DNA of 64,000 nt from Octopus sinensis (Eukaryota). Below the pieces are notes generated by a model. The model did not search any database and was not told the origin of the DNA. It was given only the letters and a program-made list of their open reading frames with translations. Location: contig NC_042997.1 of NCBI RefSeq assembly GCF_006345805.1, positions 136,648,001 to 136,712,000 on the forward strand, given 5' to 3'. A program made the translations under genes and the position numbers. Below are positions 2,955 to 61,689 of this stretch, in pieces. Numbering within the stretch: position 1 is the stretch's first letter; each line of letters starts with the position of its first letter.

Positions 2955-3160
2955 TCAAATTTTGGCACAAGCCAGCAAGATCAGCTGAGGGAGTAAGTCG
3001 ATTACATCAACCCCATAGATAAACTGGTACTTATGTTATCAGCTCCAAAAAAGGCAAAGTTGACCTCGGCAAAATTTGAACTCAGAATGTAAAGATAAAC
3101 AAAATGCCACTAAGCATTTTGCACAGCATGGTAATGATTCCGCCAGCTTGCTGGCTTGAG
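2955..3160 (-). mobile_element. Degenerate SINE family 2 copy
   Basis: Reverse complement matches the 22.7 kb SINE (gagttcaaatt...gaggtc...actttgcc) with CpG decay. Confidence 0.7.
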
Positions 3161-6831: not shown

Positions 6832-8169
6832 CTTGAAATGAGAGAGGAGAAAAAAAAATGTTAATGTTTTCAACTAACACTGATTATAAGTTTGAAATTT
6901 AGTGACCAACTCCTTGAAAAAGAAGCACGGATAACACACATACACAAGCTCATTTACTCTTTCCTCATTTATAAATTTAAGGCCTTGATCCTATAAAACA
7001 GATCAATATTATTTGTTAAATAGGCAATGAATTGACAAACACAGAACATTACATTAAATGCCATACAGCATTTAAATTGACGTCTATGCTTTGAGTTTAG
7101 ATACCACTTTTTTAACCAATGATAAAATAGGCATCAGATATATTCTAAGGTTAATTATATTGTCTATATTTCCTCTTCCATATATATTTGTGACCTTTTA
7201 TAGTGATAAGAAACCCACACTGTTTGTATTCAATGTTATTAATGTTAAGCCCAAGACAGCCTCAATCAAGGTGTCCTACAATCAAAGAGGTGCTAGTTGC
7301 CACCACCCTTTTTAGACAGTTTATCACAGGTTGCATTATTCAATGTCCTCCTCTTTTTTTAATACCATAGAATGTGATTCAAGAGAGATTTGCCTGATCT
7401 TTCTAGCAATCCAAGTTTCCTTCTCTGACTCATAGTCAATTTTGTTATTTAACCCCAGGTCAGTAATGATGGAGTAGACCTGTGATCACAGACATTCCAG
7501 ACACAATCATCTGTATCTTTGCATATACAGGACTACATTATCTAATGTGGTCCTTCTTTAAGATAAGAGGACACATTGAGGGAGATGAGGATGCTATTTC
7601 TAGCAGAACAATTGATAATATAGAGGCAGACCATGTTAAACCATCTTTTTTCTTATATGAGGTATAAACCTGAAATTTTACACGAAACAGAAACTGTTGT
7701 GTTGTAACATTCATGTTTATTTGAAAGAGCATTAACAATGTGAACTAGCTTGAACCAGAAATCAAAAAAGAATCAAAAATTATGTTAGCCAAGAGATCAA
7801 TGTATGGTAGTTACCATCTTAAATGTTGGTTCGCAGAAAGTATTAAAGTAGCAAAGATAGCAGATATTTAATCATATCTAGTTTGCTTTCTCACAGTCAA
7901 GAGTTCTAATTACATAATGGTTAAATTTGTACTTTCACCCAGGAAAGAATGTACCAATAAAATATTGTTTTAAACATTTACCCCCTCCAAAGCCGTGAGA
8001 GACCCTTGACAGTCAGAACATTAGTGTATCATATATAACATTCCCACATGCCTTAATACCTATTCATGATAGCTAAGTGTACAGTAATGAACCATTTTAA
8101 TCAGTAATACCTATTTACAGTTTAGTGAAGTGGGTCAAATGAGAGTTACATGTATTGGCTATGAAATTG

Positions 8170-21742: not shown

Positions 21743-21744
<2 letters not shown>

Positions 21745-22735
21745 GGCATCTAGCTGGTGGAATCGTTAGCACGCCGGGCGAAATCGGATCTTTTCCTTTT
21801 GAACGGCAGTTTTCAACACAATTTCTAGTTAACTAAATAAACACTTTTAAACTTCGTATACTGGTAGAATGTGTCAAAATAAAACATTTTTTTCTCTTGG
21901 CTTTCTTGAGAAATTGTAATTTGTAAGTTTAACGTAGTTTAATTTTTCGAATTTCAACCAATCCTATGCCCTCTATTGAGCTAAAATCATTTGCTACGTC
22001 TAAAACAGACAACATCCTGTCACTAACCCTCACCCTAACCCTAACCCTAAATTTAGCCTTTCGTTTTTTTTTCTTAATTGTTAAATTAATTTAAGGATAA
22101 TAAAGAAAAAAAAACGAAAGGCTAAAACGAAAGCAATGGAAAATAATTTTAATTTAACAATTAAGAAAATAACGAAAGGCTAAAACGAAAGCAAAAACTC
22201 AAAACAAAAACAAAACGAATAATTTGACACACGCGTAACAATTAAATTAATTTAACAATTAAGGAAAAAAAACCAAAGGCTAAAATTTAGGGTTAGGGTT
22301 AGGGTGAGGGTTAAGGTTAGTGACAGGATGTTGTCTCGGTTTTAGACGCAGCAAATGATTTTAGCTCAATAGAGGGCATAGGATTGATTAAAATTCGAAA
22401 GATTAAACTACGTTAAACTTACAAATTACAATTTTCTCAAGAAAACCAAGAGAAAAAAATGTTTTATTTTGACACATTCTACCAGTATACGAAGTTTAAA
22501 AGTGTTTAGTTAACTAGAAATTGTGTTGAAAACTGCCGTTCAAAAGGAATAGATCATCGAAATCTTTAGCGGTATTTCGTCTGCATCTACGTTCCGAGTT
22601 CAAATTCCACCGAGGTCGACTTTGCTTTTCATCCTTTCGGGGCCGATAAATTAAGTACCAGTGAAACACTGGGGTCGATGTAATCGACTAGTTCCCTTCC
22701 CCAAAATTTCAGGCCTTGTGCCTAGAATAGAAAGG
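21743..22735 (+). mobile_element. SINE family 2 (tail A) split by a MULE-like foldback element
   Basis: Head taaggc..agctgg..gaatcgttagcacgccgggcgaaatc resumes at 22557; preceded by (ATT)n. Confidence 0.8.
21786..22556. mobile_element. Foldback Mutator-like MITE with ~290-bp inverted arms containing (CCCTAA)n
   Basis: Arms begin GGATCTTTT..TTTGAACGGCAGTTTT; duplicated flank cgaaatc; same terminus as the 39.5, 40.8 and 62.8 kb copies. Confidence 0.85.
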
Positions 22736-22736
22736 C

Positions 22737-22950
22737 TAAGGCAGCGAGCTTGCAGAATCGTTAACACGCCGGGCAAAATGCTTAGCGATATTTCGTCCGT
22801 TTTTATGTTCTGAGTTCAAATTCTGCCGAGGTCGGCTTTGCCTTTCATCCTTTCGGGGTCGATAAATTAAATACCAGTTGCATACTGGGGTAATCGACTT
22901 ATACCCTCCCCACAAATTTCAGGCCTTGTGCCTATTATAGAAAAGGTTAT
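22737..22950 (+). mobile_element. SINE family 2 (tail A), tandem second copy
   Basis: B box GAGTTCAAATTC; body gcctttcatcctttcggggtcgataaa; tail ttcaggccttgtgcct..tagaaaagg(tta)n. Confidence 0.85.
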
Positions 22951-28528: not shown

Positions 28529-29819
28529 CGAGGGACGTTCAATAAGTAATACCTCTGACCCACTTGCAGTTGTTTGATCTAGCTGAAATTTTGCACGTGC
28601 AATCATTTATATCTCTATAGAGTAAGTGGCAAATTACAGCACTGAATTAATTGTGGTTTCTGATTTACAGGTGTTTGAACCGAGTCAAGTGTTAAATGGA
28701 ACCTGTTGAGTGTCGAGCAGTGATCCGGTTTTTGTATTTGAAAGGACGCACACCACGGGAGACTTTTGATGAAATGAAAGTAACTTATGGTGATGATGCC
28801 CCATCATATGACCTTGTAAAACGCTGGCATCGTGAATTCAAACATGGTCGGAACTCTGTGGAAACAGCTCCCAGATCTGGTCGCCTCCTTCTGCCATTGA
28901 TGAGGCATCTGTCCATCAAGTTGAGGCTGCCATTTTGGAAGATCGACGCATAACTATTCGCCAAATAGCCCATGAGGTCAAGATTAGTACCGGGTCTGTG
29001 GAAACTATCATTCATGACCATTTGCATATGCAAAAGGTATCTGCCAGATGGATTCCCAGGTTGCTCACGCCTTTCCAGAAGCAAGAACGCGTCGAGTGCT
29101 CGAGGGTGAATTTGGAGATGTGCCAAGAAGATGAGTCAAAATTTTTCAAAAGACTGATTACACAGGATGAAACCTGGGTCCATCACGATGATCCAGAGAC
29201 CAAAGCCAAGTCAATGCAGTGGAAGCACCGTGACTCACCCCCTCCAAAGAAGGCAAGGGTGCAGCCCTCCGCTGGCAAGGTCATGCTCACAGTCTTCTGG
29301 GACCAGGACGGAGTAGTGATGACAGATTTCCTGGCAAAGGGTACCACAATTGCAGGAGCCTATTATGCTTCACTTTTGAGGAAATTAAGAGAAGTTATCA
29401 AAATCAAGAGGCGGGGCAAGATCAGCAAAGGCATCCTCCTCCTGCAGGACAACGCTCCGGTCCACAACTCGCTTGTCGCCAGATCAGAAGCACAGGCGTA
29501 TGGCTATGAACTCCTCCCCCATCCCCCTACTTTCCTGACCTTGCACCCTCTGATTTTCACCTCTTCCCAGTCATGAACTTGTTTTTGAAAGGAAAGCGTT
29601 TCCCAGATGATGCAGCCTTGATTTCTGAAGTCGCGTTCAGGTTGGAGGACCAAGCTGGGGTCTTCTATAAAAACGGTCTCCAGAGCTGCATCAAACAATG
29701 GGCGAAATGCGTAACTCTGGGTGGTTCCTATGTAGAAAAAGACTAATAACTGTGCCAAGTTTCGTTGCTCTACTGCTATGGGAAGTGGGTCAGGGGCATT
29801 ACTTATTTAACGCCCCTCG
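28529..29819 (+). mobile_element. Full-length mariner (D,D34D) element, 1291 bp, transposase frameshifted twice
   Basis: TA TSD (28527-28, 29820-21). TIRs CGAGGGACGTTCAATAAGTAAT / revcomp CGAGGGGCGTTAAATAAGTAAT. Motifs WIPRLL, ITQDETW, LQDNAPVH, PDLAPSDFHLF. Confidence 0.95.
28696..29746 (+). pseudogene. Mariner transposase pseudogene
   Basis: ORFs 28696-28953 and 28935-29576 plus a C-terminal frame ending gaaaaagactaa; two frameshifts. Confidence 0.9.
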
Positions 29820-33769: not shown

Positions 33770-36560
33770 GTTAAGAAATGTAAACAGTCTGAGACAATTT
33801 TTTCAGGCAATGAACCGATCTGCCAGAACATGTCCTGTAAGGTGAAGAATGCGTTTGTATAGTTGGTTTTTTTGGTAAGTGGAGGTGATGCTTCTGGGGG
33901 TGGGGTGGCAGTATTTTGGGGATGATAGGTGTGTCAGCAAGGGGCATAAATGTTTCGGAAATGGCTTCCTTTTCCTCTATCGATAGAGACAATCTCTTTT
34001 TTTTCCGTGAATGTCCACAGTGAACAGTTTCGGTGTGCTTCTCAGAACGCGATAGGGACCAGTGTAGGGAGGTGTGAGCAGTCCCTTGACGACATCATTT
34101 CTTACAAACACGTGAATCCAAGTAGAAATATTCGGAGGTACTGTAGAATAAATAGACTGGTCGCGAGGAAGCATTGGTGGCAGGTCTGCAAAGAATGACC
34201 TGAGTCGCGTGACGTAAGATGTGGGATCCGCATTCGGTAAGTCGACGGGCGCCAACATTTGTCCAGGAAGTGCTAAGGTAGTGCCATACAGGAGCTCAGC
34301 GGAGGAGTAGCCTAAATCCTTGACAGCTGAGCGGCACCCCAGCAAAACAATGGGGAGAAACTCGGACCAACGATGAGGATCAGGAGCCGCGTGAATAGCG
34401 GCTTTAAGCTGGCGGTGGAATCATTCCACCATTCCGTTCGCGGCGGGATGGCAACTTGTGGTGTGGATGTGCTGAACTCCGAGCAATCTCGAAAGCTCGC
34501 GGAACAGTCAAGCTTCAAATTGGCGCCCACGATCAGTAATAATCTTAGAGGGTACGCCGAAGCGTGATATCCAACCGGAGATGTGTGCTCTGGTGACTGT
34601 TTCTGCGGAAATATCCACGAGAGGGGTGGCTTCAGGCCATCTGGAGAAGCGGTCGATGCAGATCAATATATAAGTAAATCCGCAACTGACCGACCAAGGA
34701 CCAACCAGGTCGATGTGTATGTGACGGAATCTGGTGTTCGGTGGCTGGAAGTGCCCAAGAGGTGCTCTCGCGTGACGATGCACCTTGGAACGCTGACATG
34801 GTAGACAGGCATGTGACCAAGCAATAATAGACCGACACATATTCGATCAGAAAAAGCGAGCCAAGATAAGCTTTGCTGTGGCCGCAATGCCTGGGTGTGA
34901 CAGTGGATGCAGTGCTTCAAAAACAGCACGACAGTGATGTTCAGGGACGAGGGGTTGGAGTAACCCGGTAAAAACATCGCAGAGAATGGTTCCTTCAGAA
35001 AAAGGCAGAGGCAGGTGTTCAAACTTGCAGCAGGAAAACTGTGGTGAAGAGACATCCAAAGAGTTCAAGGAGAGTTGGTCAGTAGCCATAGCAACCAAAT
35101 CAATCAAAGCAGGAGATAACAATGCACCAACAGGCAGGTGAGATAAGGCGTCAGTGGGGATGTTGTCAGTGCCAGTGATGTGGCGAATGTCACTAGTGAA
35201 CTGTGATATGTAGTCCAAATGCTTTGTTTCTCTGGGCGAGTACTGGTCTGTTTTGGCATAGAGAGCGAACGTTAGTGGTTTGTGGTTGGTGAAAATCGTG
35301 AAATCTCTACCTTTGAGAAGATGAGAGAAATGCATCACCGCTAGATAAATTGGTAAGAGTTCTTTACCAAACACACTGTATCTATATTCAGCATCTTTCA
35401 ACTGGCGAGAAAAGAAGGTCAATGGTTGGCTTCGGCTGTTGAGAGATTGTTCTAAAACTGCGGCAATAGCGGACGATGACGCGTCGATAGTGAGTGATAA
35501 TTTTGCATCTGCAACAGGATGAGCGAGAAAGGATGCTTGAGCAAGGTCAAATTTGACAGATTCAAAAGCTTAGATGGCTGTAGGAGACAGCGTTATCGGG
35601 GAATCTTTTTTTCGTTGATCTTTCAAGAGCTGGGTCAAGGGAAGAAACTTCTCTGCACAGTTAATGAAACGATGATAATAATTAATTAAACCAATAAAAT
35701 TCCTGCGCTGTTTTAAGGAAAACTGGAGGAGACAAGCGTTTGATGGCTTCCACTTTAGAGGGAAGCAGACGAAATCCGTCGTCGTCAATGAGATGCCCCA
35801 AGAATTCCAAATTGGTAGAACCAAATACACACTTAGCGGGTTGATCTTCACATCATAGGAATGGAGGTGCTGGTCTGGAGTAACACTGGCGATTAGGTCA
35901 TCGACGTATGCGAAGACAAAATCTAACCCACAAACAACGTCATCAATGAACCTTTGGAACGTGCTGGCCGCATTGCAAAGACCAAACAGCATAGACAAAA
36001 ATTCAAACTCTCTAAAAGGCGTGGTGACGGCTGTCTTTGGAATGTGGTCGGGGTTGACAGGGATTTGTTGGTGCGCTCGTACCAAGTCGATTTTAGAAAA
36101 AAAGCCTTGCATAGCAGACAAAAAATCCTGCACATTGGGTAGGGGATAGCGATCGACGATAGTGACAGTATTAAGACATCTAAAATCTCCAACCGGTCGA
36201 AAATTAGCTTCATTCTTCCTGGCCATGTATAAAGATGTTGCCCACGGGATCGTGGAGGGACGAATAAGGCCCAGCTGGAGCATATGCTCAAATTCAGCCC
36301 GGGCGATCCGGAGTTTCTCTAGAGACAAACGGTGCGGTTGGGAAAAAACTGGAGGTCCCTTAGTCGTGATGAAATGTCTCGTGGAATGGATTGGATTCGA
36401 CGGATGAAATGACAAATCAGTCAACTTCGGAAACGAAACGAGTAACTGGAGGTAAAAGTCACCCGAAGCAGCCACAAAGAAAGAAGGGCTCACAACAGGA
36501 ACATAAGAATCCTTTCCGGAAACAGCGAGTGAGATAGTGTCATCAATTATGTACATTATT
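33770..36560 (-). mobile_element. Degenerate Ty3/Gypsy pol (RT-RNaseH-integrase), no LTR found
   Basis: ORFs with DRYPLPN/FSKIDLVRA/FAYVDD (RT), YSVFGKELL (RH), [27 protein letters not shown] (IN); multiple frameshifts. Confidence 0.92.
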
Positions 36561-36720: not shown

Positions 36721-36935
36721 AAGGCGGCAAACTGGCAGAATTGTTAGCACGCCGGGTGAAATGCTTAGGGGTATTACGTCCGTCTTTACGTTCTGAGTTC
36801 AAACTCTGCCGAGGTTCACTTATCGGGCTCGATAAAGTAAGTACCAGTGAAGCTCTGGGGTCGATGTAATCGACTAGTCCCCTCCCCAAAAATTTCAGGT
36901 CTTATGCCTTTAGTAGAAAGGATTATTATTATTAT
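36721..36935 (+). mobile_element. SINE family 2 (tail A) between (ATT)n tracts
   Basis: Full head, body and tail; (att)n on both sides. Confidence 0.85.
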
Positions 36936-44903: not shown

Positions 44904-45115
44904 CTTTTCTACTCTCAGCACAAGGCCCGAAATTTTGGGGGAGGGGGCCAGTCGATTAGATCTACCCCAGTACACTACTGGTACTTAATTTATCGACCCC
45001 GAAAGGATGAAAGGCAAAGTCGACCTCGGCGGAATTTGAACTCAGAACATAAAGACAGACGAAATACCGCTAAACATTTCGCCCGGCGTGCTAACATTTC
45101 TGCCAGCTCGCCGCT
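44904..45115 (-). mobile_element. SINE family 2 (tail A)
   Basis: Reverse complement of the 22.7 kb copy. Confidence 0.85.
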
Positions 45116-45904
45116 TTTAGAAACCCAAAGATAAGAACCAAAATGACTTTAACGTTCACTTTCAACGGTAGGTAACATTGCAGCAAAAGACTAAGATGAC
45201 GATGAAGGCGAATAGGTGTGGGTGCAGTTCACACACATATTTTCACATCTCGTCTCTGCAACTGAGTTACTCTCATGGATCGAGTACAGGCTGGAGTTGG
45301 ACATTTGGCGCTCATTACACTGAGTCATTCGGACAATATGGTCAGCGGAAAGACAACACTTATTCTGTGTAAATTAGTGGGTTGTTTACGTGAAATTGAC
45401 TAGGAAATTATTCAAAACGTTAACGAGGACAATCTAAGTAATCTTTTCTAAGAGACTTTAAGGCATGGATTATGAGCAATTTCCTAAAGTCCTCGGCCTG
45501 AACAGTGCTATGGGTTGGTTAAAACATTATTTGTTTGAGATTAGTTCTGTAGTCATTGGTCCGGCTTCCTGCAATAAGAATCCACTCGCCGTTATAGCAA
45601 GAGATTTTCTACATAATAGCTGTGATGAAGGAAGTTATATGATGTATGCTGTTTGAGGACAGAGATTCTCCTCTCTAGCCAAACTAAAATAATAATAATA
45701 ATAAATGAAAATGCGAAACTTCTTTAAATGATAATGTAACTGATGTTTCTTACACACGTATAAAGTTCGATAGGTTTTTGTTTTGTTTTTTCTTAGTTTT
45801 CTTTTGTCTCTTTATTTTGTTTTGTTTTTGTTCTTTGTTTTTTTTTTACGTTGAAGACTCAATAAAAGTGACAGCAGTAGCGAAATTTGAAGGACTATAT
45901 TACA

Positions 45905-46266: not shown

Positions 46267-46332
<66 letters not shown>
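46262..46332. repeat. (GATA)n at the 3' end of Tx1 copy B
   Basis: About 17-18 units. Confidence 0.97.
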
Positions 46333-46333
<1 letters not shown>

Positions 46334-49012
46334 CTTTCTTTTATTAGCCACACAGGGCTGAATACAGAGGGGACAAATACAAATGCAGAGCTTTTCTTTT
46401 CGAGGGTGGAAAAAAATAAAAAATGTAAGATTGCGATCAAAAGGGATCGAGAGGAGGAAAAAAAAGGAAAAAAAAGAAAATCGTGTATCACAGAAATAAT
46501 GGTGTAAACATTGATATAACAAGATTGGGTTCATCCGTGGGAAGAAAAGCCTACAGAAAAGACCACGGGAACCCCAGTCAGGGAGGAAATAAACACATGA
46601 GGTCAAAAATGCTCTCTTTCTTTCTTTTTTACGATCTACAGGATCATGCTCAAAATGGTTTCGTTACTAGCACGCACCATCTTTGCAACATTCACCCATC
46701 TTTTTTTTAATCTTTCGCGAGACAAAACTTCCCTCTCCATTCTCACCTTCCTTTTCAAGTGGTACTTGAAAAAGTTGATGAGCGATTGGCCAGAGAGGTA
46801 AGTGTTTGTCTCTAATCCTTTCGCTCGAGTCCACCACACACATTCTTTCACCATGGCCACCAGTACGATGAAAAACTGCCTTGCCTTCCCGGTTGAGGGA
46901 AGGGGGCGGAGCAATTCTCATGATAGACTCGGCCGATAGGCGGATTCGTCCCACACGTGACAGCAGCCGTTCGGCATAAGCCCACAGGTCGGAAATGGTT
47001 GGACATTGCACGAGTGCGTGCAGAACGGTTTCGTCGCTCTGACCGCATCTCGGGCAAGTCGGTCCAGTGTGTCTGGAACCGTGTCTGTAGAGCTTATCCC
47101 GAACAGGTAATGCTTCTCGATAGCACTGCCAGGCCAGGGATCTTTGGTGATTGTTCATAGGTCCCGGCCCGAAAGTTGTCCTGAACAGGCGGGTCAGGTG
47201 TTCCTCGTCGACGCCCAGACTCTGCCCGAGTTCGTCGTCGCACCTCCCCTCCACTAATCCTCTATAGAATGCCTTTGTTGTGATGGAGTCGCACAAGTTC
47301 GATCCCGGACGGCAGAGTTGCTTGAGAGCAACGCGACACTCGCGGTGCCATTCGCCTAGCCTCGGTCTCTGCTTGATCCATGACTGTAGTTCGTCCAAGG
47401 AGACGAGCTGCGGGAAAGCGCGCCGCACAAAAGGCGACCACCCCTGTTCACCGTTGTCTATGAAGCGCCGGAGATGTCGCAGTCTCAGCGCATGTCTGCG
47501 CATCATCAACCACGGCATGCCCAGCCCTCCATTTAGCGGGTGTTGGCAGCAAATGGATCGCCTAACCATCGGAACGTTTCCCTTCCACAAGAAGCGGAAG
47601 AGTATGCGTTCCAGTTTGGTGATGGTAGGGTCGGGACAAGGCACGACGGTCAGACGATACTCGATGACGGATGCGATGTACGCGTTCGCCACCTCCGCCC
47701 GACCTTTTAGGGATAGCTTTCTCTCAGTCCATTTCTGGGTGAGAGTAGCCACCCTAGTCGTTATCTCGCCCCAGTTCTTCTCCATTTGGAGGTCCGGACC
47801 GAACCAGACCCCGAGCAATTTAACCGGTCCGTCCGTCCAGCGTCCCACGATGGAGACGCTGTTGGACGGCATGGGCTTGCTTCTCCAGGTGCCGAGCCGC
47901 AAGCCCACTGACTTTTCCCGGTTAATTTTTGCTCCCGTTACCGCTTCGTATTCTTTCAGTCTCTCGCCGACCAGCTCGATGTGCTCGTAGCTCGACACTA
48001 TGACGGTGACGTCATCCGCGTATGCAGACACGCTCCTCCCGCATCCCAGCTCTCGTGGGATGCCCCTCAGCGTCGCCAGTTTCCGCAGTAGTGGCTCAAG
48101 AGTCAGTACATACAGCAGCGATGAGAGGGGGCATCCCTGACGAACCGAACGCATGATGTTAAAAGGTCTGGATAGATGACCATTTACGCGAACTACTGAG
48201 CGGATGCCGCTGTATAAGGCAGCGATCCAACCGCGGAAAACTGGACCGAAACCAGCCGCTTTAAGGACAGCCTCCAAGTAGTGATGGTCTACCCTATCGA
48301 AGGCTTTTGATTGATCCAAATTGATCAGCGCCCCACCCATGCCAGGATTTTTAACTACCCTGTCTATGATGTAGCGCATCAGGTGGAGGTTGTCATGAAT
48401 ACTTCTACCCGGCACGGCGCATGTTTGCGCCTTGTCGATTAGTTTCTTGATGACAAGCGCCAACCTCTCGGCTAACACCTTGGCCAAAATTTTCAAATCT
48501 GCGTTGAGCAGAGTGATGGGCCTGAAATTATCTATGGCGTCCCCCTTGTTTGGGTCTTTCTTGATCAGTGCCACTGCTCCTCGCTTTACAAAAGCAGGAA
48601 TACTCCCGTTCTGCTGCCAGTTGCAGTAGACAGCTGCCAAGACGCCTCCAAACAAGTCTGGCATATGAAAATAAAATTCGTAGGGCAGACCATCCAAGCC
48701 TGGTGACTTGTCTCTCGCGCAGCCTACCATCGCATCCTGTACGTCCGCAGCTGTGATAGGCTTTTCACAAGACTCCACCTCCCTTGCTGAGAGTCGTGGC
48801 AAGGCATGCAGGTAGGCACTAAAGTCCACTCTGCTTTCTGACTCACCACTTATCCCAAACAGTTGGGTGAAGTGTTGTTGAAAAACCCCACACATCCTTT
48901 TAGGCTCGAGCAATTCGCGCCCCTGTTCATCTATAAGAGACTTGATGGTGGCTCTGTTGCCTCGTTGCGTCTCCACCACTCGGGCCTCTTGGGCGGCTCC
49001 AACTCCTTCGTT
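46333..49012 (-). mobile_element. 5'-truncated Tx1-clade LINE, copy B (RT + C-terminal zinc finger)
   Basis: ORF with KSPGLDGLP, DQSKAFDRV, VRQGCPLS, YADD, CPRCGQSDETVLHALVQC; one frameshift near 46830; ends AATAAAAGAAAG then (TATC)n. Confidence 0.95.

Positions 49013-49076
<64 letters not shown>
49013..49076. repeat. (GATA)16 between Tx1 copies
   Basis: 64 nt. Confidence 0.97.
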
Positions 49077-49478
49077 TGTTTCTTTATTAGCCACACAGGG
49101 CTGCACACAGATAGAACAAATTACAAGGTAGAGCTTTTCTTTTGAAGGTTTAAAAAATAAAAAAAATAAAAAATAAAATAAAATTAAAATAAAAAAGGGG
49201 GGGTCGATCAAAAGGGATCGTAAAAGGAGAGAAAGAGGACAAAAAGAAAGGGGGGGTTAAAGAAAAAAGGGGGAGAGGAAAAAAATTGATCAATAGGGAT
49301 CGTTATCACAGAAATGTCAATATGAAGTGTAAAGGGGAGGACAGGTGAGGTTTACCCGTGGAAAGAAAAGCCTACGGAAAAGACCACGGTAACCTCGGTC
49401 AATGAAGTCACATGTTATATTTCTTTTTTTTTTTTTTTTTTTTGCAAATAAGCAACTCTCTGTATTAATTTTTACGGT

Positions 49479-52400
49479 TCATAGAATCATAGTCAAGGTG
49501 GCTTCGTCATTCATACGTGCCATCCTTGCTACATTTACCCATCTTTTTTTAAAACATTCACTAGACAAAACTTGCCTCTCTACTCTCACTTTTTTCTTCA
49601 AGTGATACTTGAAGAAGTTGATGAGAGATTGACCAGAGAGGAAAGTGTTTGTCTCTAATCCTTTCAGACGCGTCCACCAGATACATTCTTTCGCCATAGC
49701 CACAAGTATGATAAAAATAGCTCTTCCTTCCCGTTTGAAGGAAGGAGGCGTGACGATATTAACGATAGACTCGGCTGATAAACCGACACGTCCACACGTG
49801 ACAGCAGTCGTTCGACATAAGCCCACAGGTGGGAAATTGCTGGACACTGCACGATTGCGTGCAGAGCGGTTTCGTCGCTCTGCCCGCATCTCGGGCAGGT
49901 CGGCCCCGTGTTTCTCGAGCCATGCCTATAGAGCTTATCCCGAACGGGTAGCGCTTCTCGGTAGCACCGCCAGGCCAGGGATCTCTGGAAGTTGTCCATA
50001 GGTCCCGGGCCGAAAGTCGTTTGAAACAGGCGGGTCAGGTATTCCTCGTCGACGCCCAGGTTTGCCCCGAGCTCGTCGTCGTACCTCCCCTCCACTAATC
50101 CCCTATAGAATGCTTTGGTTGTGTTGAAGTCACTCAAGGTCGACCCGGGACGGCAGAGTTGCTTGAGAGCAACGCGACACTCGCGGTGCCATTCGCCCTT
50201 CTTCGGCCTCTTTTTGATCCACGACTGTAGTTCGGTCATGGAGACGAGTTGCGGGAATGCGTGCCTCACAAACGGCGACCACACCTGTTCACCGTCGTCT
50301 ACATAGAGCCGGAGATGTCGCAGTCTCAGCGCGTGTCTGCGCATCATCAACCACGGCATGCCCAGCCATCCTTTTAACGGGTGTTGACAGCAAATGGATC
50401 GCCTGACCATCGGGACGCATCCTTTCCACAAGAAGCGGAAGAGGATGCGTTCTAGTTTGGTGATGGTAGGGTCGGGACAAGGTACGACGGTCAGGCGGTA
50501 GTAGATGATGGACGCGATGTACGCGTTCACCACCTCCGCCCGACCTTTTAGGGACAGTTTCCTCTCGGCCCATTGCTGGGCGAGAGTGACCACCCTACTC
50601 GTTATCTCGTTCCAGTTCTTCTCCATTTGGAGGTCCGGACCGAACCAGACCCCGAGCAACTCAACCGGGCCGTCTGTCCAGCGTCCCACGACGGAGGTAC
50701 TGGTGGACGGCATGGGCTTGCTTCTCCAGGTGCCGAGCCGCAAGCCCACTGACTTTTCCCGGTTGATTTTTGCTCCTGTCACCGCTTCGTAGTCTTTCAG
50801 TGTCTCGCCGACCCGCTCGATGTGCTCGTGGCTTGACACTATGACGGTGACGTCGTCCGCGTATGCAGACACGCTCGTCCCGCATCCTAATTCTCGCGGG
50901 ATGCCCCTCAGAGTCGCCAGCTTCCGCAGTAGTGGCTCAAGAGTCAATACGTATAGAAGCGCCGAGAGGGGCATCCCTGACGGACCGAACGTGCAATGTC
51001 GAAGGGTCTCGATAGATGTCCATTTACGCGAACTACCGAACGGATGCCCCTGTACAAGGCAGCTATCCAGCCGCGGAAGACGGGACCGAAACCAGCCGCT
51101 CTCAGGACTGCCTCCAAGTATCGATGGTCTACCCTATCAAAGGCTTTCGATTGATCCAAGTTGATCAGGGCCCCACCCATGCCAGGTTCGTTAACTACCC
51201 TGTCTATGATGTAGCGCATCAGATGGAGGTTGTCATGGATGCTCCGGCCCGGCACGGCGCACGTTTGTGCGTTGTCGACCAGTTTCTCCATGACAAGCGC
51301 CAACCTCTTGGCTAACACCTTTGTTAAAATTTTCAGGTCTGCATTGAGCAGAGTGATTGGCCTAAAGTTATCTATAATGTTTCCCTTGTTTGGATCTTTC
51401 TTCAGCAGAGTTACAGCTCCTTGACTCACAAAACCGGGTATGCTCCCGTTTTGCTGCCAGTTGCAGTATACCGCTGCCAAGACGTCTCCAAATAAGTCTG
51501 GCATACAATAGTAAAATTCGTAGGGTAGACCATCCAAACCCGGTGATTTGTCCCTCGAGCATTCTGCCATCGCTTCCCGCACTTCCGCCGCCGTGATGGC
51601 ACCTTCGCAGCACCCTGCCTTTCTTGTCGAGAGTCGTGGCAGGCTATGTAGGTAGGCACTGAAGTCTACCCTACGTTCTTGCCCTCCACTCGTCCCGAAC
51701 AGTCGGGCAAAATGCTGCTGAAAGGCCTCACACATTTTACTTGGATCGAGCAATTCGCGCCCCTGTTCATCTACCAGTGACCGAATGGTGGCTTTGTTGC
51801 CCTGTTGCGCCTCTGCCACCCGGGCCTCTCTCGCGGCTCCAACACCTTCGTTCCTTAGAGCACGCATCCTAGCTCTGACAGCACATCCTTCGTGTTTGGC
51901 GTTGAAGTGTTGGTCGAGGGCCAACCTCGCCGCCAAAACGTCGGATGCGATGCCGCTTCTAATTGCCTCTTCTAGCTTCTTAACTAGCTCACCCTCTACT
52001 CTATTTCTATCTATGGCTAGTGCTTTGCTGTACCTAATCGCTTCTGCTTTTACTGCTCTCTTGAGGGCAAACCACCGTTTGTTGTTGATGATGGCTCCCG
52101 TCAAAGCCCTCTTTACTAGTGTGCTAATCCGGTCTCTGAAAACTTGTCTGGACGGGAATGATGCGTTCAGTTTCCAGTACCCAGGACCCTGTCTATGTGC
52201 CTTATCTAAGTCTAGCGTACACGTCACCAATTTGTGATCCGTGTAGCTGACTGTGTGGAATTGTGGACATCCTAAGTTATCCTTGTCTACTGTCCTACAC
52301 AGTATCCTATCTAGATACGATCTCGACGACCCACTGCGGTTGCTCCATGTCCACGTTGGTGCATTTGGGTGGTCGAGTCGGTACCTGTCAGACAGTTGGA

Positions 52401-52914
52401 ATCGTCTGAGCAGGTCTCTGAGGCATTTGCATCCCCTTCTGTTTCTGTCTCTACCCACGTAGTCTACATGCGTGTCCAAGGTAGCATTCCAATCCCCCAC
52501 TAAGAGTAAAGGACGAGACGTTCCCAAGAATACTTCTAGACGTCGAAAGAAATCCGCCCGACCTGTTAAGGGCGGTGCGTAGACTGATACGAGTCGAAAA
52601 GCGCACCCATTGCTGCCGTCAACATCCAGAACGATCAGTGTACCCTCCGGGTCTACGAATATCGTCTTGACTTCGAGATCCAGGCTCTTGTGAAAAAGTA
52701 CCGCGGTGCCACTACCGCCCATCCTCGGCAGACAGGGAGCGAAATAAATGTTAAACTGTCCGCCAAACATGGACTTTAGGGCCCGTGGATCGTGGAGTCT
52801 GGTCTCACTTATGGCTATGATTCCCAAATCATGTGACTTGATGTCATTTAGGAGGTATCCTTGTTTCCAAGGAGACCCCAAGCCACGCGCATTCACACAA
52901 CCAATCTTGACCAT
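49479..52914 (-). CDS. Tx1 ORF2: apurinic endonuclease + reverse transcriptase + zinc finger, two frameshifts
   Basis: GCVNARGL, SETRL, VGDWNA, YLDRIL, TDHKLV (APE); DQSKAFDRV, RQGCP/LS, YADD (RT). Frameshifts near 50970 and 49790. Confidence 0.93.
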
Positions 52915-52959
52915 GATTCTATTGGGGTGTGTGCTTTAAAACACACAAATGAAAGTACA

Positions 52960-54691
52960 GAGAATTACTTACTTGTGTCGAAAGTTTTGGCTTCCTCGTT
53001 CTTTGATGTGTCTTCGAGGAGGTTTCTATATAGTTTTTGGGACAGATATTTCTGGAAACCCCCTACAGCATTTGAGAAGAGGGCTTTGAGTTTGTGGTGT
53101 TGTGTTTGTGTGATGTGTAGTATTTTGATGTGTTGGGTGGTGTAGTGCGTGGATGATTGCTATTTTTAAAGTCATCTTCACAAATGTTTGTGTATCCTGT
53201 GATGTACTCCATTAGTTTGGAGTCTTTTGTGTCTATCGCTGATAGCATTGTTTTTGTGGTGTTGGTGCTTGTTTTGTTGTGTATGGAGTTTTCAGGGTTC
53301 AGGTATCTCCCTGCTTTGGTTGCGATTTCTTGTTTGGTTTTTCTTGATCTTTTTCTTTTACCCCCTGTGGCTATTTGCCATTCTGTCGAACTTTCATCGT
53401 TAGATGAAAAGTCTGACGAATCAGCAGGGGGCAAGGGTAAAGCGTCTGGGTGTGTTTGTGCGGTTGTAGATATTGTTGTGGTGCGCGGGGAGGGTGTTGC
53501 TGGGGGGTTTGTTGTGGTTATTGTCTCTCCTACATCCTTGGTGCTTGTCTTCTTCGTTGTTATTCTTGGTGTTGGAATTGGTTTATTTGTTGTTGGTGGT
53601 GATGATTCTGTTCTTGGCGCTGGTGTTGGTGTTGTTTGGTTGGGTTGGCTTGTTCTTTGTTGTTTTTCCTGCATTCCGCATACAGCTTCTTGACTAGCTG
53701 TCCATATTGTGGTGTGGGCAATAATCCTGGCTTTTGTGATTTTTCCTGTGGCTGTTGTTGTTGTTGTAATTTTGCGGCAGATTTGCACTCCTTTTTGAGG
53801 TGTGCCTCACTTCCACATGTATAGCATCGTGGCCTTCTGCCCTCGACTACTACGTATAACTTGCGGCCATCCTCAAGATGTACGTGGGTGGGGATTTTAT
53901 TTATGTCCTCTTGACTTATGTGGAAGAGGAACTCTATTCTCTTTCCCAGCCAGTCCTTGTTTTCCGAAACACCGATATCTAGGATGTTTAAGTCCTCCAT
54001 TTCGGATGTTAAGGCGGATGTAATCCACAGTGTTGTAGTCACTTGGGGGACACCACTGATAATGACTTTCATCACCTTCTGGCCGAGGTAACTCGGTGTC
54101 AACGTTAGTTCATCAGAATGAAGGGTTATCGTTGAGAATTTCTTCGCCAACTCTTCATTCTGAAAAACCACCTGTACGTGTGCGAACTTGTTCGCCCAAG
54201 TCACACAATCCTTGTATCCCCAGATGGGGCGTAAGCACTTTTCGACTTTGTCTGTGCTTGCCTTTTCTGGACTTTTTGTTTTCTTATTTGTGATTTTATA
54301 TACAATTGTCTTTTTTTTCTCCTCATTCAGTATGTGCTGAGGTATGTGTAAGAGTATTTTTCCGTTTTGATTTGTAATAAGGTTTCTGCAATCTTTAATC
54401 TGTTGTGTAGTAAACGAAACTTTTGTTACCTTTTCTTTTATCGCCTCGGCGAAGTTTGTTGTTGTTTTGTTATTGTTGTTACTGCCGGTGGTGTTGGTGT
54501 TGATGGCAGGGGTGTGGGTTGTAGGTTTGTGGTTGCTGATTATGCAACTAGCAAGGGGTGGAAAATTGCCTGCGTAATTTAGTCCTGCATTAGCGCAAAT
54601 TTCGGCATTTCGTTTGCTTGTCGTCGTTATTTTTTCACTTGTTGGTGATGGAGTGAGCAGTGGTTGAAGGGAATTATTGTTGTCGTCGTCG

Positions 54692-54738
<47 letters not shown>

Positions 54739-55101
54739 ATTGTCGTTCTTGGTGACGGCGGTGGTGTTAGTAGTATTAGTAGCATTGACGGCACGGTCTT
54801 TGGTGGCGGTGATGGTGATGTTGGTATTGTTATTGGTGGCGACGTCTTTAGTAGGGATAGCAGTTTTAGTAGCAGATTCTGCCATGGTGTTGTTGTCGGT
54901 GTTGGTGGTGGTGGTGGTGGTGGACTCACTGATGGTGTTGACGGTGCTTGGCCTTGCGACCTTTGTTTTGTATTTGTTGCTGTTGTCGATGTTGATGGTG
55001 GCGGAGTTGTCAGGTTCAGCGTAAGGTAACAGAGCATCCTGTTTTTCTGCCTCTGCGTCACGCTTGACTTGCACCTCAGCCTCGTGGTGACCAGTGGCCA
55101 T
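52960..55101 (-). CDS. Tx1 ORF1 (RRM-like region + CYTCGSEAHLKKEC knuckle, low-complexity ends), frameshifted in its C-terminal part
   Basis: ATG at 55101 (aaaATGG). ORFs 53560-55131 and 53063-53788 overlap in different frames; the true end is approximate. Confidence 0.75.
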
Positions 55102-55291
55102 TTTGGAAATAAAATGGCTAAATGAAACCACGAAGGCTATGAGAATTTTTTCTTTTAAATTTTGCCCACAAGGGGCAAAATTTTGTGTAGATATTAATCA
55201 AGGTTTGCAGTGGATGTTGTTGCACAACTTTTAAACACAAAATATTTCACAATAAACAATTTTCAACGTACAAAATGACCAACTTACGTGG

Positions 55292-56627: not shown

Positions 56628-56860
56628 AATATATATATGAGACAACGAAAAAGAATTTGTTTCTTATATATTTTGCTATATTGTTCTCCTATGACGAACA
56701 CAACAGTGATTAGCATATTCACGTTCGAATTTACCAAAACGTATCAAGAATAAATATGCAGGTCTCGTTTTGATTCTCGTTGTTCACGTTCATGTGGCGA
56801 TTTATTATCACTTGGCTGATATCAACAGGTATCAACAAATAACTTTTTTGCTGAAGTTAT

Positions 56861-57104
56861 TGTAGTGTGAATGATGAAGAGGACAACAGAAAAGGAGAAA
56901 GGAAATATGATTAGGTCTTACCTCGGCGAAGATTAGTCTACCAAACTCAGCGTCCAGTCGCTTCCGCGTCTCAGCTCGAACTGCCCCGCTTCGTTAATGC
57001 CACACGTGCGTCGTCCCTCACCGCTTCCGCTTCCTGCCGCGCATGCGCCCTGCAAGCCCTACTTCCGCCCTCCCCTATCTGTCGTCCTCTCCACCGACAC
57101 CACA
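56861..57104 (-). repeat. 3' LTR
   Basis: Preceded on the minus strand by a polypurine tract at 57105-57117. Confidence 0.97.
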
Positions 57105-58126
57105 CGCCCCCCCCCCTGATCTACAGATCATTGAACCGGCTTTCTCACTCGCTTCCCGCTCCCGAACTCGCACTTTAACTGGTTTCATAATCAGCCAACC
57201 AGGGAGGAGGGTGCCGTTCCCTCTGTGGTCGCAGTGCGACCCTAGGACTGGTTCCTGGTATGTTGCTGCTGGCCTCATCTTCCTGTCTACTGGTGTTGTT
57301 TTCATCTTGCCCACTGCTGCTGGTCCCATCCTCTGAAGCATGGACAATCCTCCGTATATCCAAAACATGGCGTGGCATACCATCGACCGAGATGTTATTC
57401 TTTGAATTTACAGAGGTTATTGTCCCCTTTCCCCATTGTGATGTACACCGTGCATTTGGGGGTTTTACCCAAACTTCTTCCCCGACCTGCACGAAGGCGT
57501 GCTCTTCCTCTGCCCCGGGTCGCATTGATGCAGTACACGGATGCCTCCACTCGTACCTGAATATTGCCCTGTGTGGCACCGACTCCTCAGCCTGTCCTGA
57601 TCTGGGCGACATATTGTACCAAAATACAGCCTCGATTGGTGAAATGTGACCCCTCTCTGCCATGGCCTTGATGGTACGATGATGCCTTTCCACCACCCCA
57701 TTTCCACTTGGCCGGTATGCCGCCCTGAAGAAGCGGTTTACCTTCCACCCATCAAGCATTTCTTTCAGCACATCCAAGCGAAATGCAGTGCCATTATCCA
57801 GAAGCAGTTCATCCACGGGGCCTCGTTCCAGGAATATCTCATTCAACACTTTCACAATTTCTTCTGCGGTCCCCGTCTTCATCTCCCTCCATATGGCCAA
57901 CCGCCCCAGTCCGCAGTCAACCATTGAGAGGTATGTCCCCTGCCGGTAGTGTGTTATGTCCACCGCCAGTCGTTTCCAGTCATGGTCCACTGGAATACTT
58001 CCCGCTTCATGCACGCCCGGAGCAGGGTCGATGGACTAGCACCTGTCACAACTGCTAACCACTCTCTGCACGCTCTGTCTTGTTACATCGGAGTCAACTT
58101 TTCTGGCTAGGAACAATGTCCTGTCC

Positions 58127-58346
58127 AAGGCGGCGAGCTGGCAGAAACGTTAGCACGCCGGGCGAAATGCTTAACGGTATTTCGTCTGCGTTACGTTGTG
58201 AGTTCAAATTCCGCCGAGGTCGACTTTGCCTTTCATCCTTTCGGGGTCGATAAATTAAGTACCAGTTACGCACTGGGGTCGATTTAATCGACTTAATACC
58301 TATGTATGTCCTTGTTTAGCCCCTTGTGGGTAATAAAGAAATAGGT
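58127..58346 (+). mobile_element. SINE family 2 (tail B) inserted antisense into Gypsy pol
   Basis: Same head and body as the 22.7 kb SINE, but the tail is gtccttgtttagccccttgtgggtaataaagaaataggt. Confidence 0.9.
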
Positions 58347-60210
58347 ATGCAGTCTCCGCAACTTCGAGTCGCTCAGACGGCATACTGCAGCTACAGCCTC
58401 CTTCGCATCCTCTGGCATCTGCAACCAGGCTCGCTTTACCCTGGTCAGGACGTCTGCCTTGTTCTTCTCGGAAGGCACAAAGATCACGCTCAGCTTCAGA
58501 TTGAACTCAGTGGTTAGTTCACGCAGTATTCCCAATCGACGCTTTACCAGCATCTCTGCCGCCCCTTTGGTCCGCACCCTCCGCTCATTGGTGATGACTG
58601 CTGTCACCCAACCAAGTACAGTGGCCGAATCAGTCCTGATTTCTATGGTGTGCAACCCCCACTTCAAGGCTAGGTTCACCCCCTTCAACACGGCATCCAA
58701 CTCCGCCACATTGATATGATTCCAGTCATCCGTCTTCCTGAGCCAGGCTGCATCTTCCACCATGACGCCTCCCACTTCTAAGACAACCCCTGTTGCGATG
58801 CTGCTGGCGTCACACCATACAATCCCGCTCTTTGATTTGGGAACATACCAGCTGCCTCTCACTGGGTCCTCTGCTCCTACTCTGACCAAGACTTCCTGCA
58901 TCATGTCGATCGTCTTCTCCCTCACTCTATCATTCCACTTCACTCCTTCGGCTCGTCTCTTGATGAAGCTACATGCTGTCCGGAGCCAACCTGCAATCAG
59001 GTAGTGTCCCACCAGCTTCCCACACACAGAGAACAGTTCCCGTCTACTTATGCTGGCGCCCAGTTCAGGGACCTCATTCCCTCGCCGGAACACCAACGCG
59101 CCGGCCTTGTCTCTCCATAGCTTGAGGCCCAGTGCAGCACCTCCCTCCATTGCCTCTGGTGGCTTGGCGATCAGTCCAAAACTCTTCAGGTGGCCTATGA
59201 CCTCCGTTGCTGGTATTACGGTTTCATCCACCAGAATGTCACCGATGTACGAATTGGTGGCCCTTTTTACTCTGTCCACCTTTCCCAGGATGGCCTTGAG
59301 AATTGTTGCCATAATCTTTGGCGCTGAATTCAGCACGAACCCCAACCTGGTCAGACAGTACGTCCGGCCCTTATACCTGACGAGCTGGTACTTCCACAAT
59401 TTCTCAGCCTCATGCACCTGTAGGTATGCCGACTTCAAATCAACAATCGTGGAGGCCCCTGTCATCTGCCTCCACTCTCGCAAGGTGTCTCCGCAGACAT
59501 CCGTGGCCTCGCCGCCTGTATGACACGATACGTGGTCATTCAGCTCCCGGAAGTCAAGCACTGGCCTGACCTTATGCTTTGTGGGCTGTATCACCGCCAT
59601 CAGTGGCAGGACTCCGCTCTCTTCTTTTTCCCAAGGGATCAATATGCCCTCCTTAATCCACCGCTCCACCTCCCCCTCGAACTCACTTCTGGTATCTCCT
59701 TTTAGAGTATGCTGATAGCAGCCCACTTTATTCTTTAACATCGGGGGCTCTCCCTTCCAGTGCCACTCCACTGTCCACCTCTTGCCATCAAAGACAGCCC
59801 GAAAATCCTGGTCTTCAATGGTGTGTGCAGCATGCTTTTCCTCACGGTTGTCACCGGTGCATGGTCTCGCCCAACACGGTTTCCCCGCTAACCCAAATGT
59901 TACACCAGCCTCGTTAACGGTGACACCTCCCAAGCGGGTGATTGCATCCATCCCCATCACCACGTCGATCTCGTCCACCAAGTGACCAACCACAATCGCT
60001 CGCAGCGTCAGCTGTAGTCCCTGCACCACAATCCGCGCATCTGTAACCCCTTTGCAGTGTACTTCTCTTCCGTCGACAGCTCTAACACTGCTTCCTCCAC
60101 TCCACGTCTCTGCCACTTCTGTAGTCATCAGAGTTGTTGTACAGCCCGTGTCCACAAGGGCTCGCGACATCTTCCCCTCCACCAGAATGTCGACCACAAG
60201 TAGCGACGAT

Positions 60211-60275
60211 AAGCGCGCTTCTACTGATCCGAGGGGACAACTACCGGCGCAGTAGTCTCCCGCAGTCCGTTTCCC
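60211..60275 (-). promoter_or_regulatory. -1 ribosomal frameshift signal (G GGA AAC + stem/pseudoknot)
   Basis: Slippery heptamer at 60269-75 is in the gag frame and a -1 shift enters the pol frame; 7-nt spacer then a 10-bp stem. Confidence 0.7.
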
Positions 60276-60960
60276 CGCAGACACTCGCTGGCTATATGCC
60301 CCGGCTCTCGACACCGGTAGCAAATCACCTCAGGCTTGGGTGACACGCAGTCATGCACCATGTGTGGACCTTGGCACCGGAAACACTGTCCTTTGAACGG
60401 TTGCACATGTTCTTTCTTTAGCCCCTCTCCGCTGCTCCTAGCTGGGCCACTTTTCGATGTTGCAGTCGCTGCTACCGACGTCATCATGCTGTACGAAACT
60501 AGTACGCGTGCCCGAGATATGATGTCCGCCATCGGCATCGAATGCACATTCGGAAGCTGCTGTAGCTCGACCGACATGTCGGGAAAGCCAGTCACGAACG
60601 CCAACCTAACCGTCCGGTCCAGCGACTCTCCCTCGTAACCCGCCAGTTTAGCCAATCTCCTAAGTTCATTGGCAAACACGTCCACCTGTTGCCCAGTCCA
60701 TCTTGTTCTACCCAGGCAAGCGTATGCCTCGAACATTCCCTCCGCAAAGGCCTCCATCAACCGGACTTCCACTTTCTCCGCGCTGAGTTGGTCTGTCTCT
60801 TCCATCTCTAAATACAACGCCAACGCCGGACCATCCAAGTACAGCGGCATGAAGCTCGCCAGGTCAGCTTCGCCACCAACTTCACTTTCTTCAGCCAAGC
60901 GACAACATTCGTGTCGCCGCAAAACGGTTTTATAATTTCGTGCGAAATACGGGCACTCAT
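60221..60960 (-). pseudogene. Gypsy gag (two zinc knuckles) with an early frameshift
   Basis: MSARISHEIIKPFCGDTNVVAWLKKVKLVAKL shifts into DLASFMPLYLDGPALALYLEM...CFRCQGPHMVHDC..CYRCREPGHIASEC. Confidence 0.85.
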
Positions 60961-61007
60961 CATCATTTTTATTTATAAAACCGTGTGAGAATTGTTTTGG
61001 TTTATAT

Positions 61008-61019
61008 GCCGAAATAGCT
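61008..61019 (-). promoter_or_regulatory. Atypical primer-binding site AGCTATTTCGGC, complementary to tRNA-Phe(GAA) nt 1-12
   Basis: + strand reads GCCGAAATAGCT directly joined to the LTR TG; metazoan tRNA-Phe begins GCCGAAATAGCTCAG. Confidence 0.7.
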
Positions 61020-61263
61020 TGTAGTGTGAATGATGAAGAGGACAACAGAAAAGGAGAAAGGAAATATGATTAGGTCTTACCTCGGCGAAGATTAGTCTAC
61101 CAAACTCAGCGTCCAGTCGCTTCCGCGTCTCAGCTCGAACTGCCCCGCTTCGTTGATGTCACACGTGCGTCGTCTCTCACCGCTTCCGCTTCCTGCCGTA
61201 CATGCGCCCTGCAAGCCCTACTTCCGCCCTCCCCTATCTGTCGTCCTCTCCACCGACACCACA
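61020..61263 (-). repeat. 5' LTR
   Basis: Differs from the 3' LTR at 5 of 244 positions. Confidence 0.97.
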
Positions 61264-61689
61264 GTTATAAACAAGAGCCCTGAACTGTTGTTAAATTCAT
61301 TGATGTAGCTTACCTTTACTCGACGAGACCCAATGATATCGAAACACTGGATTTTTCTTGAGTCTCCTTACACTAATAAATCGAGTGTGTTACGAACGCA
61401 TTCGTCTTAAAGGAAAAGCAGTTCTATGACAAAATACAACAGCTGTTAGCATAGTCACATTCGAATCTATCGGAATACATTAAGAATAGATATGCAAGTT
61501 AGCGTTGTATAAAATATTTATAATAATTTAAATTATATTGTAGTATCATATTTCATTGAACTTTTTTCTATTTGATATCATGTATAAACTAGAACAAAAC
61601 AGTAAATTCAAGTATGCACTTATTTTTAAAACAAGTATTTGCAATTGTAAAAGGTAACAAAGGTGAAAAAAAATGTCGCTTGCTCTTTG

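Follow-up and report, generated by a model that had tools for sequence, protein, structure and literature searches.

A candidate primer-binding site complementary to tRNA 5′ ends in a divergent LTR retroelement family represented in Octopus sinensis

The retroelement and its surroundings

The window, which here denotes the whole stretch of 64,000 nucleotides analysed from the Octopus sinensis genome (contig NC_042997.1, positions 136,648,001 to 136,712,000), contains abundant transposable elements throughout. Towards its end lies, on the minus strand, the 4,403-bp (4.4 kb) LTR retroelement that is the subject of this report (56861-61263), delimited by direct repeats, open reading frames and Pfam matches, and composed, in order, of an LTR, a putative 12-nt primer-binding site, gag, pol (PR-RT-RH-IN), a polypurine tract and a second LTR, with no env between the LTRs. 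Elsewhere the window holds a mariner-type transposase fragment (Transposase_1; 28935-29573, plus strand), a further RVT_1 fragment (35573-36556, minus strand), and a tandem duplication of ~2.84 kb of non-LTR retrotransposon sequence (46300-55130, minus strand, 81-88% identical), which falls within a minus-strand run of open reading frames with apurinic-type endonuclease, RVT_1 and zf-RVT domains and has (GATA)n runs at its junctions. A dispersed repeat of ~170 bp, whose copies (2988-3158, 21743-21784, 22558-22689, 22738-22905, 36721-36875 and 44950-45117, with one more nested in the pol of the element) are 75-92% identical to each other, has on its reverse strand a tRNA-like head and a GTTCAAATTCC-type B box, and is, judging by these features, probably a tRNA-derived SINE.

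The 5′ LTR (61020-61263, minus strand; TGTGGTG...CACTACA) and the 3′ LTR (56861-57104, minus strand), recognized as direct repeats of each other, are 97.95% identical across 244 nt, have TG...CA ends, and are flanked by a 5-bp target-site duplication, ATAAC, whose upstream copy occupies 61264-61268 and whose downstream copy, adjoining the 3′ LTR, occupies 56856-56860 (both minus strand). Read in the sense of the element, the 5′ LTR runs from 61263 to 61020 and terminates in ...CACACTACA, and the 3′ LTR, from 57104 to 56861, terminates in the same ...ACA. The putative primer-binding site (61008-61019) is followed by a leader of 41 nt (60967-61007) that contains neither TGG nor a second candidate site and leads to the first gag ATG at 60966. 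The gag region (60221-60966), with two CCHC zinc knuckles, was defined by Pfam (zf-CCHC) and by tblastn with the intact gag of a relative (L003), and pol (PR-RT-RH-IN; one part, 57175-60323) by Pfam and by comparison with intact relatives. Within pol, all on the minus strand, are an aspartic protease domain (DTG; 59934-60194, pol-frame residues 44-130, from the Pfam models gag-asp_proteas and Asp_protease_2); a reverse transcriptase from fingers to thumb (58869-59831, from the DUF7047 match, a profile comparison with HIV-2 reverse transcriptase and a fold model), inside which DUF7047 (PF23088) is matched at 58878-59048 (E=4.7e-22); a single RNase H domain of PF00075/PF13456 type (58476-58826, Pfam) with a WCDAS motif; and an integrase catalytic core (rve; 57709-57969, from Pfam and a profile match to retroviral integrases at 1e-15). 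The polypurine tract, an A and then a run of G (57105-57117, minus strand), lies directly upstream of the 3′ LTR.

This copy of the element is dead. Its gag contains one frameshift, the intact L003 gag matching it by tblastn in two pieces and two frames with no internal stops; its pol contains one nested insertion of the dispersed ~170-bp repeat, one frame change and two in-frame stops; and the catalytic box of its reverse transcriptase differs from that of intact relatives by one substitution.

The 12-mer at the LTR edge and its conservation

Straight after the 5′ LTR, from 61019 to 61008, the element reads, in its own sense, AGCTATTTCGGC. The inner edge of the LTR is fixed at 61020 by the end that it shares with the 3′ LTR and by the ATAAC target duplication, so that the 12-mer abuts the LTR directly. 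A forward primer for human tRNA-Phe(GAA) begins GCCGAAATAGCTCAGTTGGGAG (PMC10505166) and a 5′ probe for Drosophila tRNA-Phe ends ...CTGAGCTATTTCGGC (PMC7038984), and the 12-mer is complementary at 12 of 12 positions to nt 1-12 of tRNA-Phe(GAA) from both species. The pairing stops at nt 12 because nt 13-15 require CTG, whereas the LTR has ACA. Its orientation fits priming, with U12 of the tRNA opposite the first base after U5 and the 3′ side of the tRNA segment directed toward U5. The 12-mer is found once in the window, for which the expected number of matches with at most one mismatch is 0.2; by hand calculation, the chance of an exact 12-mer at one fixed site is 4^-12, or ~6e-8 per tRNA, and roughly 3e-6 across some 50 distinct tRNA 5′ ends. 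No tRNA genes were found in the window by ARAGORN or Rfam. The original prediction, made from this stretch alone, had described a 12-mer abutting the terminal CA of the LTR, a leader free of a TGG primer site, a perfect complement of metazoan tRNA-Phe(GAA) nt 1-12, and a WCDAS RNase H; the first is borne out by the LTR alignment and target duplication, the second by the 41 nt before the gag ATG, the third by the printed human and Drosophila sequences, and the motif is indeed present in the pol of the window.

The pol reading frame of the element matches hundreds of relatives at 47-62% identity. Three of these carry organism names, Argonauta hians, Petrolisthes manimaculis and Oratosquilla oratoria, and the others come from ENA, Logan and JGI assemblies; the relatives typically have a pol of 910-990 aa and lie mostly on ~4-kb contigs, and a scan of viral contigs yielded none. 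For comparison of the site, 54 loci were fetched (numbered here with the prefix L). About 30 distinct relatives, with pol identities of 34-62%, carry at the LTR edge a 12-mer of the form AGCTAT-nnn-GGC; among the fetched loci, the block adjoins the LTR wherever the 5′ edge is included, with the exceptions given below. In column counts taken over 27 distinct contexts, block positions 1-5 and 10-12 show no variation, position 6 is conserved in 26 of 27, positions 7 and 9 in 24 of 27, and position 8 is free, with all four bases occurring; the last three bases of the LTR (ACA) are conserved in 25-27 of the 27. Conservation collapses directly after block position 12, and from position 13 onward no base is shared by more than 16 of the 27 contexts. 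The gag ATG begins 0-4 nt past the block in 12 contexts, which therefore have no room for a canonical TGG site or any other. In L017, an L009-type 3′ LTR runs straight into flanking DNA, confirming that the block begins where the LTR stops, and four genomic copies in one assembly (L048-L051) all retain the block. What had been presented as one odd provirus with a tRNA 5′-end site is thus, as regards the site, a property of a large family: the conservation of the 12-mer at the LTR edge of homologous elements, which the original prediction proposed to check, is found in the ~30 relatives, and a normal TGG site in sister copies, which would have counted against that prediction, is absent from the intact relatives and the multiple genomic copies, all of which carry the 12-mer.

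Two relatives depart from this pattern. L018 has a block in which the last three bases are deviant, and L019 (39% pol identity) has no recognizable 12-mer upstream of gag in positions 1-100, so that either the end of this contig is rearranged or this branch uses something else. The LTRs of L002 (Argonauta hians; 2969-2975 and 7025-7031) end in ...ATCAAG instead of ...ACA, with a clean 5-bp duplication, TCAGT, and with the 12-mer still directly after the LTR. Many of the ~4-kb metagenome contigs, among them L005, L010, L011, L012, L016 and L020, have a circularly permuted order (pol - LTR - primer site - gag), as is expected where assemblers join terminal repeats; such contigs give full LTRs and no information on transcript starts.

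Eight variants of the 12-mer were seen among the element and its relatives. That of the window, AGCTATTTCGGC (implied primer GCCGAAATAGCT), is shared by L002 (Argonauta), L003, L004 and L014; AGCTATCGCGGC (implied primer GCCGCGATAGCT) occurs in ten contexts and AGCTATCACGGC (implied primer GCCGTGATAGCT) in eight; AGCTATCCCGGC (implied primer GCCGGGATAGCT) in L001/L054 and L009/L012; AGCTATCTAGGC (implied primer GCCTAGATAGCT) in Petrolisthes, Oratosquilla and L052/L053; AGCTATATCGGC (implied primer GCCGATATAGCT) in the four genomic copies L048-L051; AGCTATCCGGGC (implied primer GCCCGGATAGCT) in L025; and AGCTAACACGGC (implied primer GCCGTGTTAGCT) in L029. The invariant bases of the block pair with tRNA nt 1-3 and 8-12, and the variable ones with nt 4-6 of the acceptor stem, plus one change opposite nt 7; tRNAs themselves differ at nt 4-7, matching the variable positions of the block.

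For the window copy and its closest relatives, the best explanation of these sequences is that the partner would be tRNA-Phe(GAA). The L025 variant is complementary without mismatch to nt 1-12 of tRNA-Lys(UUU), whose 5′ end was taken from the human tRNA-Lys3 gene (PMC8715211) and from a zebrafish 5′ fragment and probe (PMC4688932). Owing to a wobble at pair 6:67, this variant fits the complement of the 5′ strand of tRNA-Lys and not the 3′ strand, and the block is therefore a complement rather than a captured copy of a tRNA tail. Sequence searches of papers for tRNAs corresponding to the other six of the eight variants gave nothing relevant. The primer implied by the crustacean variant, GCCTAGATAGCT, differs at three positions from Drosophila tRNA-Phe, and therefore either another tRNA is the partner in this clade or the tRNA idea fails there. 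Among the 54 loci, a search for nearby tRNA genes (ARAGORN) detected one tRNA-Val only and no tRNA-Phe; the tRNA-Val(CAC) gene, at 3095-3167 of L045 (Oratosquilla oratoria), lies ~200 bp upstream of a 5′ LTR, which probably reflects chance and not insertion targeted to tRNA genes, because no tRNA gene was seen beside the other genomic copies scanned.

The variants are not confined to single branches of a tree of the reverse transcriptase core, a rough one built by neighbour-joining. The tRNA-Phe variant is found in the clade of the window element and again in L014, the GCCGGG variant in L001 and again in L009/L012, and the two commonest variants are interleaved. Repeated convergence of distant branches on a few discrete 12-mers fits a small set of host RNAs dictating the site, and is at odds with drift or with a cis partner that evolves along with the site.

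A proposed priming mechanism and its rivals

Taken together, these sequence comparisons make it fairly probable that the 12-mer serves as a minus-strand primer-binding site pairing with the first 12 nt of a host tRNA, which would be cut after nt 12. In the mechanism that we propose, the 5′ strand of the tRNA, comprising the acceptor stem and the start of the D-stem, would be unwound, plausibly by the two-knuckle nucleocapsid, and would anneal to the site directly after U5. Cutting of the tRNA after nt 12 would then leave a 3′-OH opposite the first base of the site, from which reverse transcriptase would extend the 12-nt primer into U5-R. The likeliest cutter, and the most economical choice, would be the RNase H that the element encodes, working on the RNA duplex as in Tf1; its four catalytic columns are invariant in the family. 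The alternative would be a host nuclease. Plus-strand strong-stop DNA would in turn copy the primer up to the primer's 5′ end, fixing the site at exactly 12 nt and rewriting it from host tRNA in each cycle, and such copying would explain why the length is exactly 12 nt, why conservation ends abruptly at position 13, and why tRNAs are easily switched. A 12-nt 5′ fragment ending at nt 12 corresponds, to our knowledge, to no known abundant class of tRNA fragments. Against tRNA 5′-end priming count this last point, the lack of a tRNA-Phe gene in the window and in the 54 loci, the six of eight variants without an identified tRNA, the misfit of the crustacean variant, and the exceptions L019 and L018. 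Priming by a 5′ fragment of tRNA-Phe, as originally predicted, has gained strong comparative support across the family, tRNA-Phe being one of several apparent partners. What the sequences show is where the site lies, how long it is, what it complements, its conservation across the family, the lack both of a canonical site and of a complement in cis, and the preserved catalytic residues of RNase H; annealing, the cut and the enzyme making it, and the copying of the primer are inferred.

The original prediction had also offered self-priming as an alternative. In a Tf1-like form of it, the transcript of the element would fold its 5′ end, such as the LTR-internal GCCGAGGUA, back onto the 12-mer, where that end would be cut and prime synthesis. 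The site does have the length (11-12 nt) and position of Tf1/Tj1-type sites (PMC4600332), and the LTR of the window does contain, from 61086 to 61078 and 66 nt before its end (predicted at ~65 nt), the sequence GCCGAGGTA (61078-61086, minus strand), which can form 9 of 12 pairs with the block, two of them G:U; in L002 and L004 there are 10-pair matches ~145 nt upstream. Yet the pairing of GCCGAGGTA is no better than in shuffled LTRs, and relatives have no counterpart of it that tracks the primer-site variant. In the 25 loci for which the LTR was complete, the LTR sequence best complementing the locus's own block did no better than in shuffled sequences (p mostly >0.5, minimum 0.04), lay at inconsistent distances, and fitted the variant of that locus no better than other variants; and in 27 loci searched from -600 to +4300, no sequence offered at least 10 Watson-Crick pairs to the block. 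Tf1-like self-priming, which has thus no complementary sequence to draw on in the LTRs or elsewhere in the elements, is rejected here as extremely unlikely, and with it the predicted role of GCCGAGGUA, no LTR or internal complement either beating shuffled controls or tracking the site variant. That the window copy had simply lost or mutated a normal TGG site, in an element otherwise primed by a tRNA 3′ end, might be entertained on account of its defective state, but intact relatives and multiple genomic copies share the 12-mer and have no TGG, and gag often starts immediately after the block, leaving ordinary 3′-end priming a virtually nil chance.

Two further readings accept the 12-mer as functional and dispense with a tRNA. 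It could bind a conserved small RNA other than tRNA, or an unrecognized RNA encoded by the element, ending in ...AUAGCU-3′, with the tRNA matches being ancestral or coincidental, a reading favoured by the same six variants without a tRNA and by the crustacean misfit to Drosophila tRNA-Phe; but two variants complement the 5′ ends of actual tRNAs at 12 of 12 positions and stop precisely at nt 1, the invariant and variable positions follow tRNA architecture, and no cis candidate is present, and we therefore regard it as unlikely. Alternatively, the 12-mer could be some other cis signal at the edge of U5, acting in dimerization through AGCT, in packaging, or in integrase recognition, with priming accomplished otherwise, for example by a protein. 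The AGCT is palindromic and invariant, and a priming role of the 12-mer is itself deduced from position and pairing; against this, the 12-mer stands precisely where a primer-binding site would stand, the leaders, 0-50 nt long, offer no other candidate, a signal for integrase would be sited within the LTR, and the tRNA matches would go unexplained, so that a non-priming role appears very unlikely.

Relation to known priming systems and to other retroelements

Since the 1970s, the rule has been that the primer is the 3′ CCA end of a tRNA, and the primer counts among the few features of retroelement replication that are fixed. Two exceptions are known to us, internal tRNA fragments (copia, Ty5) and self-priming (Tf1). 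Like canonical 3′-end priming, which operates in retroviruses, Ty3, most Ty3/gypsy and BEL/Pao elements, the mode proposed here would employ a host tRNA at the U5 edge, with tRNAs specific to lineages, but it would use the opposite end of the tRNA over 12 nt instead of ~18, at a site without TGG. Priming of the copia, Ty5 or Tca2 type by a 5′ tRNA fragment was reportedly described by Kikuchi in 1986 and Ke in 1999; there the site pairs with the anticodon-stem region of initiator tRNA-Met (tRNA-Arg in Tca2) and the primer is ~39-40 nt long. The likeness lies in a primer that is a 5′ piece of a host tRNA cut internally, with the CCA end unused, and the differences in the site and its setting (an internal site, ~39-40 nt and copia order there; nt 1-12, 12 nt and PR-RT-RH-IN here) and in the partner (initiator tRNA-Met, or tRNA-Arg in Tca2, versus apparently tRNA-Phe, tRNA-Lys and others). 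In Tf1 and Tj1, a short site of 11-12 nt lies directly after the LTR and the primer is the 5′ end of the element's own RNA (PMC4600332). With these the proposed mode would share a short site at the LTR, a primer freed when an RNA duplex is cut at its end, and a far edge set by the 5′ end of the primer, but there the element's own RNA primes, whereas here the elements contain no complement in cis, host tRNAs match as the partner, and pairing would be in trans. The proposed mode combines features of the copia/Ty5 and Tf1/Tj1 systems and equals neither. In full-text literature, in which older work is thinly covered, no description was found of a tRNA 5′-end primer site or of the site of this family; papers on a bivalve TRIM, on an atypical primer site in Culex and on an Arabidopsis 5′ fragment deal with other subjects.

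More broadly, we see about an even chance that a large, unclassified, DUF7047-marked LTR lineage, whose hosts include one octopod and two crustaceans, with many more members in marine and soil assemblies, primes from the 5′-terminal 12 nt of host tRNAs (Phe, Lys and others) by means of its own RNase H cutting after nt 12, with the site recopied in each cycle, a mode that would be the trans counterpart of self-priming in Tf1 and might have preceded it in evolution. If this is true, it would add a further priming mode and a mechanistic link between the tRNA-fragment and self-priming modes, the site variant would report the tRNA of the host, very short 5′ tRNA fragments would have a possible natural role, and the small RNAs matching this family and able to interfere with it would be 5′-derived, not 3′-derived, tRNA fragments. 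Standard annotation tools look only for tRNA 3′ ends, and the proposed priming, if true, would also explain why such tools report these abundant elements without a primer site.

As to affiliation, the original prediction spoke of a Gypsy provirus. The order PR-RT-RH-IN with gag upstream (from Pfam and the fold model), the TG...CA ends and the target duplications within the 4-6 bp range (ATAAC, 5 bp, here; TCAGT, 5 bp, in L002) agree with Ty3/gypsy (Metaviridae), but the Pfam signatures do not fit, and the tRNA 3′-end primer site usual, if not universal, in Ty3/gypsy is absent. The DUF7047 match is strong and the RNase H matches the PF00075/PF13456 models, while RVT_1, rve and protease models score below their Pfam cut-offs, RVT_1 is weak in relatives, and RT_RNaseH and Retrotrans_gag have no match. 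A single-sequence search of the PDB found nothing, and a profile search gave weak matches, to retroviral integrases at 1e-15 and to a lentiviral reverse transcriptase (HIV-2) at 9e-09; the fold model (pLDDT 76.5) matches caulimovirid and retroviral PR-RT-RH at 12-16% identity. The RNase H follows the thumb/DUF7047 directly, with ~15 residues between, and its four catalytic columns, D/E/D/D, do not vary among 16 relatives. Because this PR-RT-RH-IN LTR lineage is very divergent, the Gypsy label is not established.

The domains Peptidase_A17, DUF1759 and DUF1758 mark BEL/Pao (Belpaoviridae); neither gag nor pol, whether from the window or from relatives, gives a match to any of them at E up to 1. 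The copia type has the order PR-IN-RT-RH, which is not that of this element, and a site for internal initiator tRNA-Met with a ~39-40-nt primer, where the complement here is to nt 1-12 of tRNA-Phe or tRNA-Lys; the Tf1/sushi type has a primer site complementary to the 5′ end of its own transcript within the LTR, which these elements lack. Troyka and Odin resemble the family in being deeply divergent PR-RT-RH-IN elements of marine invertebrates with poor Pfam coverage, and neither paper mentions a primer site (PMC12440569; PMC9040795). Troyka, however, has CG..CG termini and 3-bp target duplications (PMC12440569), as opposed to TG..CA ends and 5-bp duplications here, and the Odin/lokiretrovirus lineage combines a tether with an acquired RNase H in a dual arrangement (PMC9040795), as opposed to the single RNase H of this element, so that membership in either is rejected.

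Finally, the LTRs show a minor feature of their own. Of 28 relatives, 7 have splice-donor-like GGTAAG/GTGAGT motifs within the terminal 100 nt of the LTR, versus 2.5 expected from shuffles, at 61076-61081 (minus strand) in the window and at the LTR ends of L002, L004, L010, L039, L045 and L046. They fall mostly within the clade of the window element and, from their sequence, might mark a spliced subgenomic RNA.
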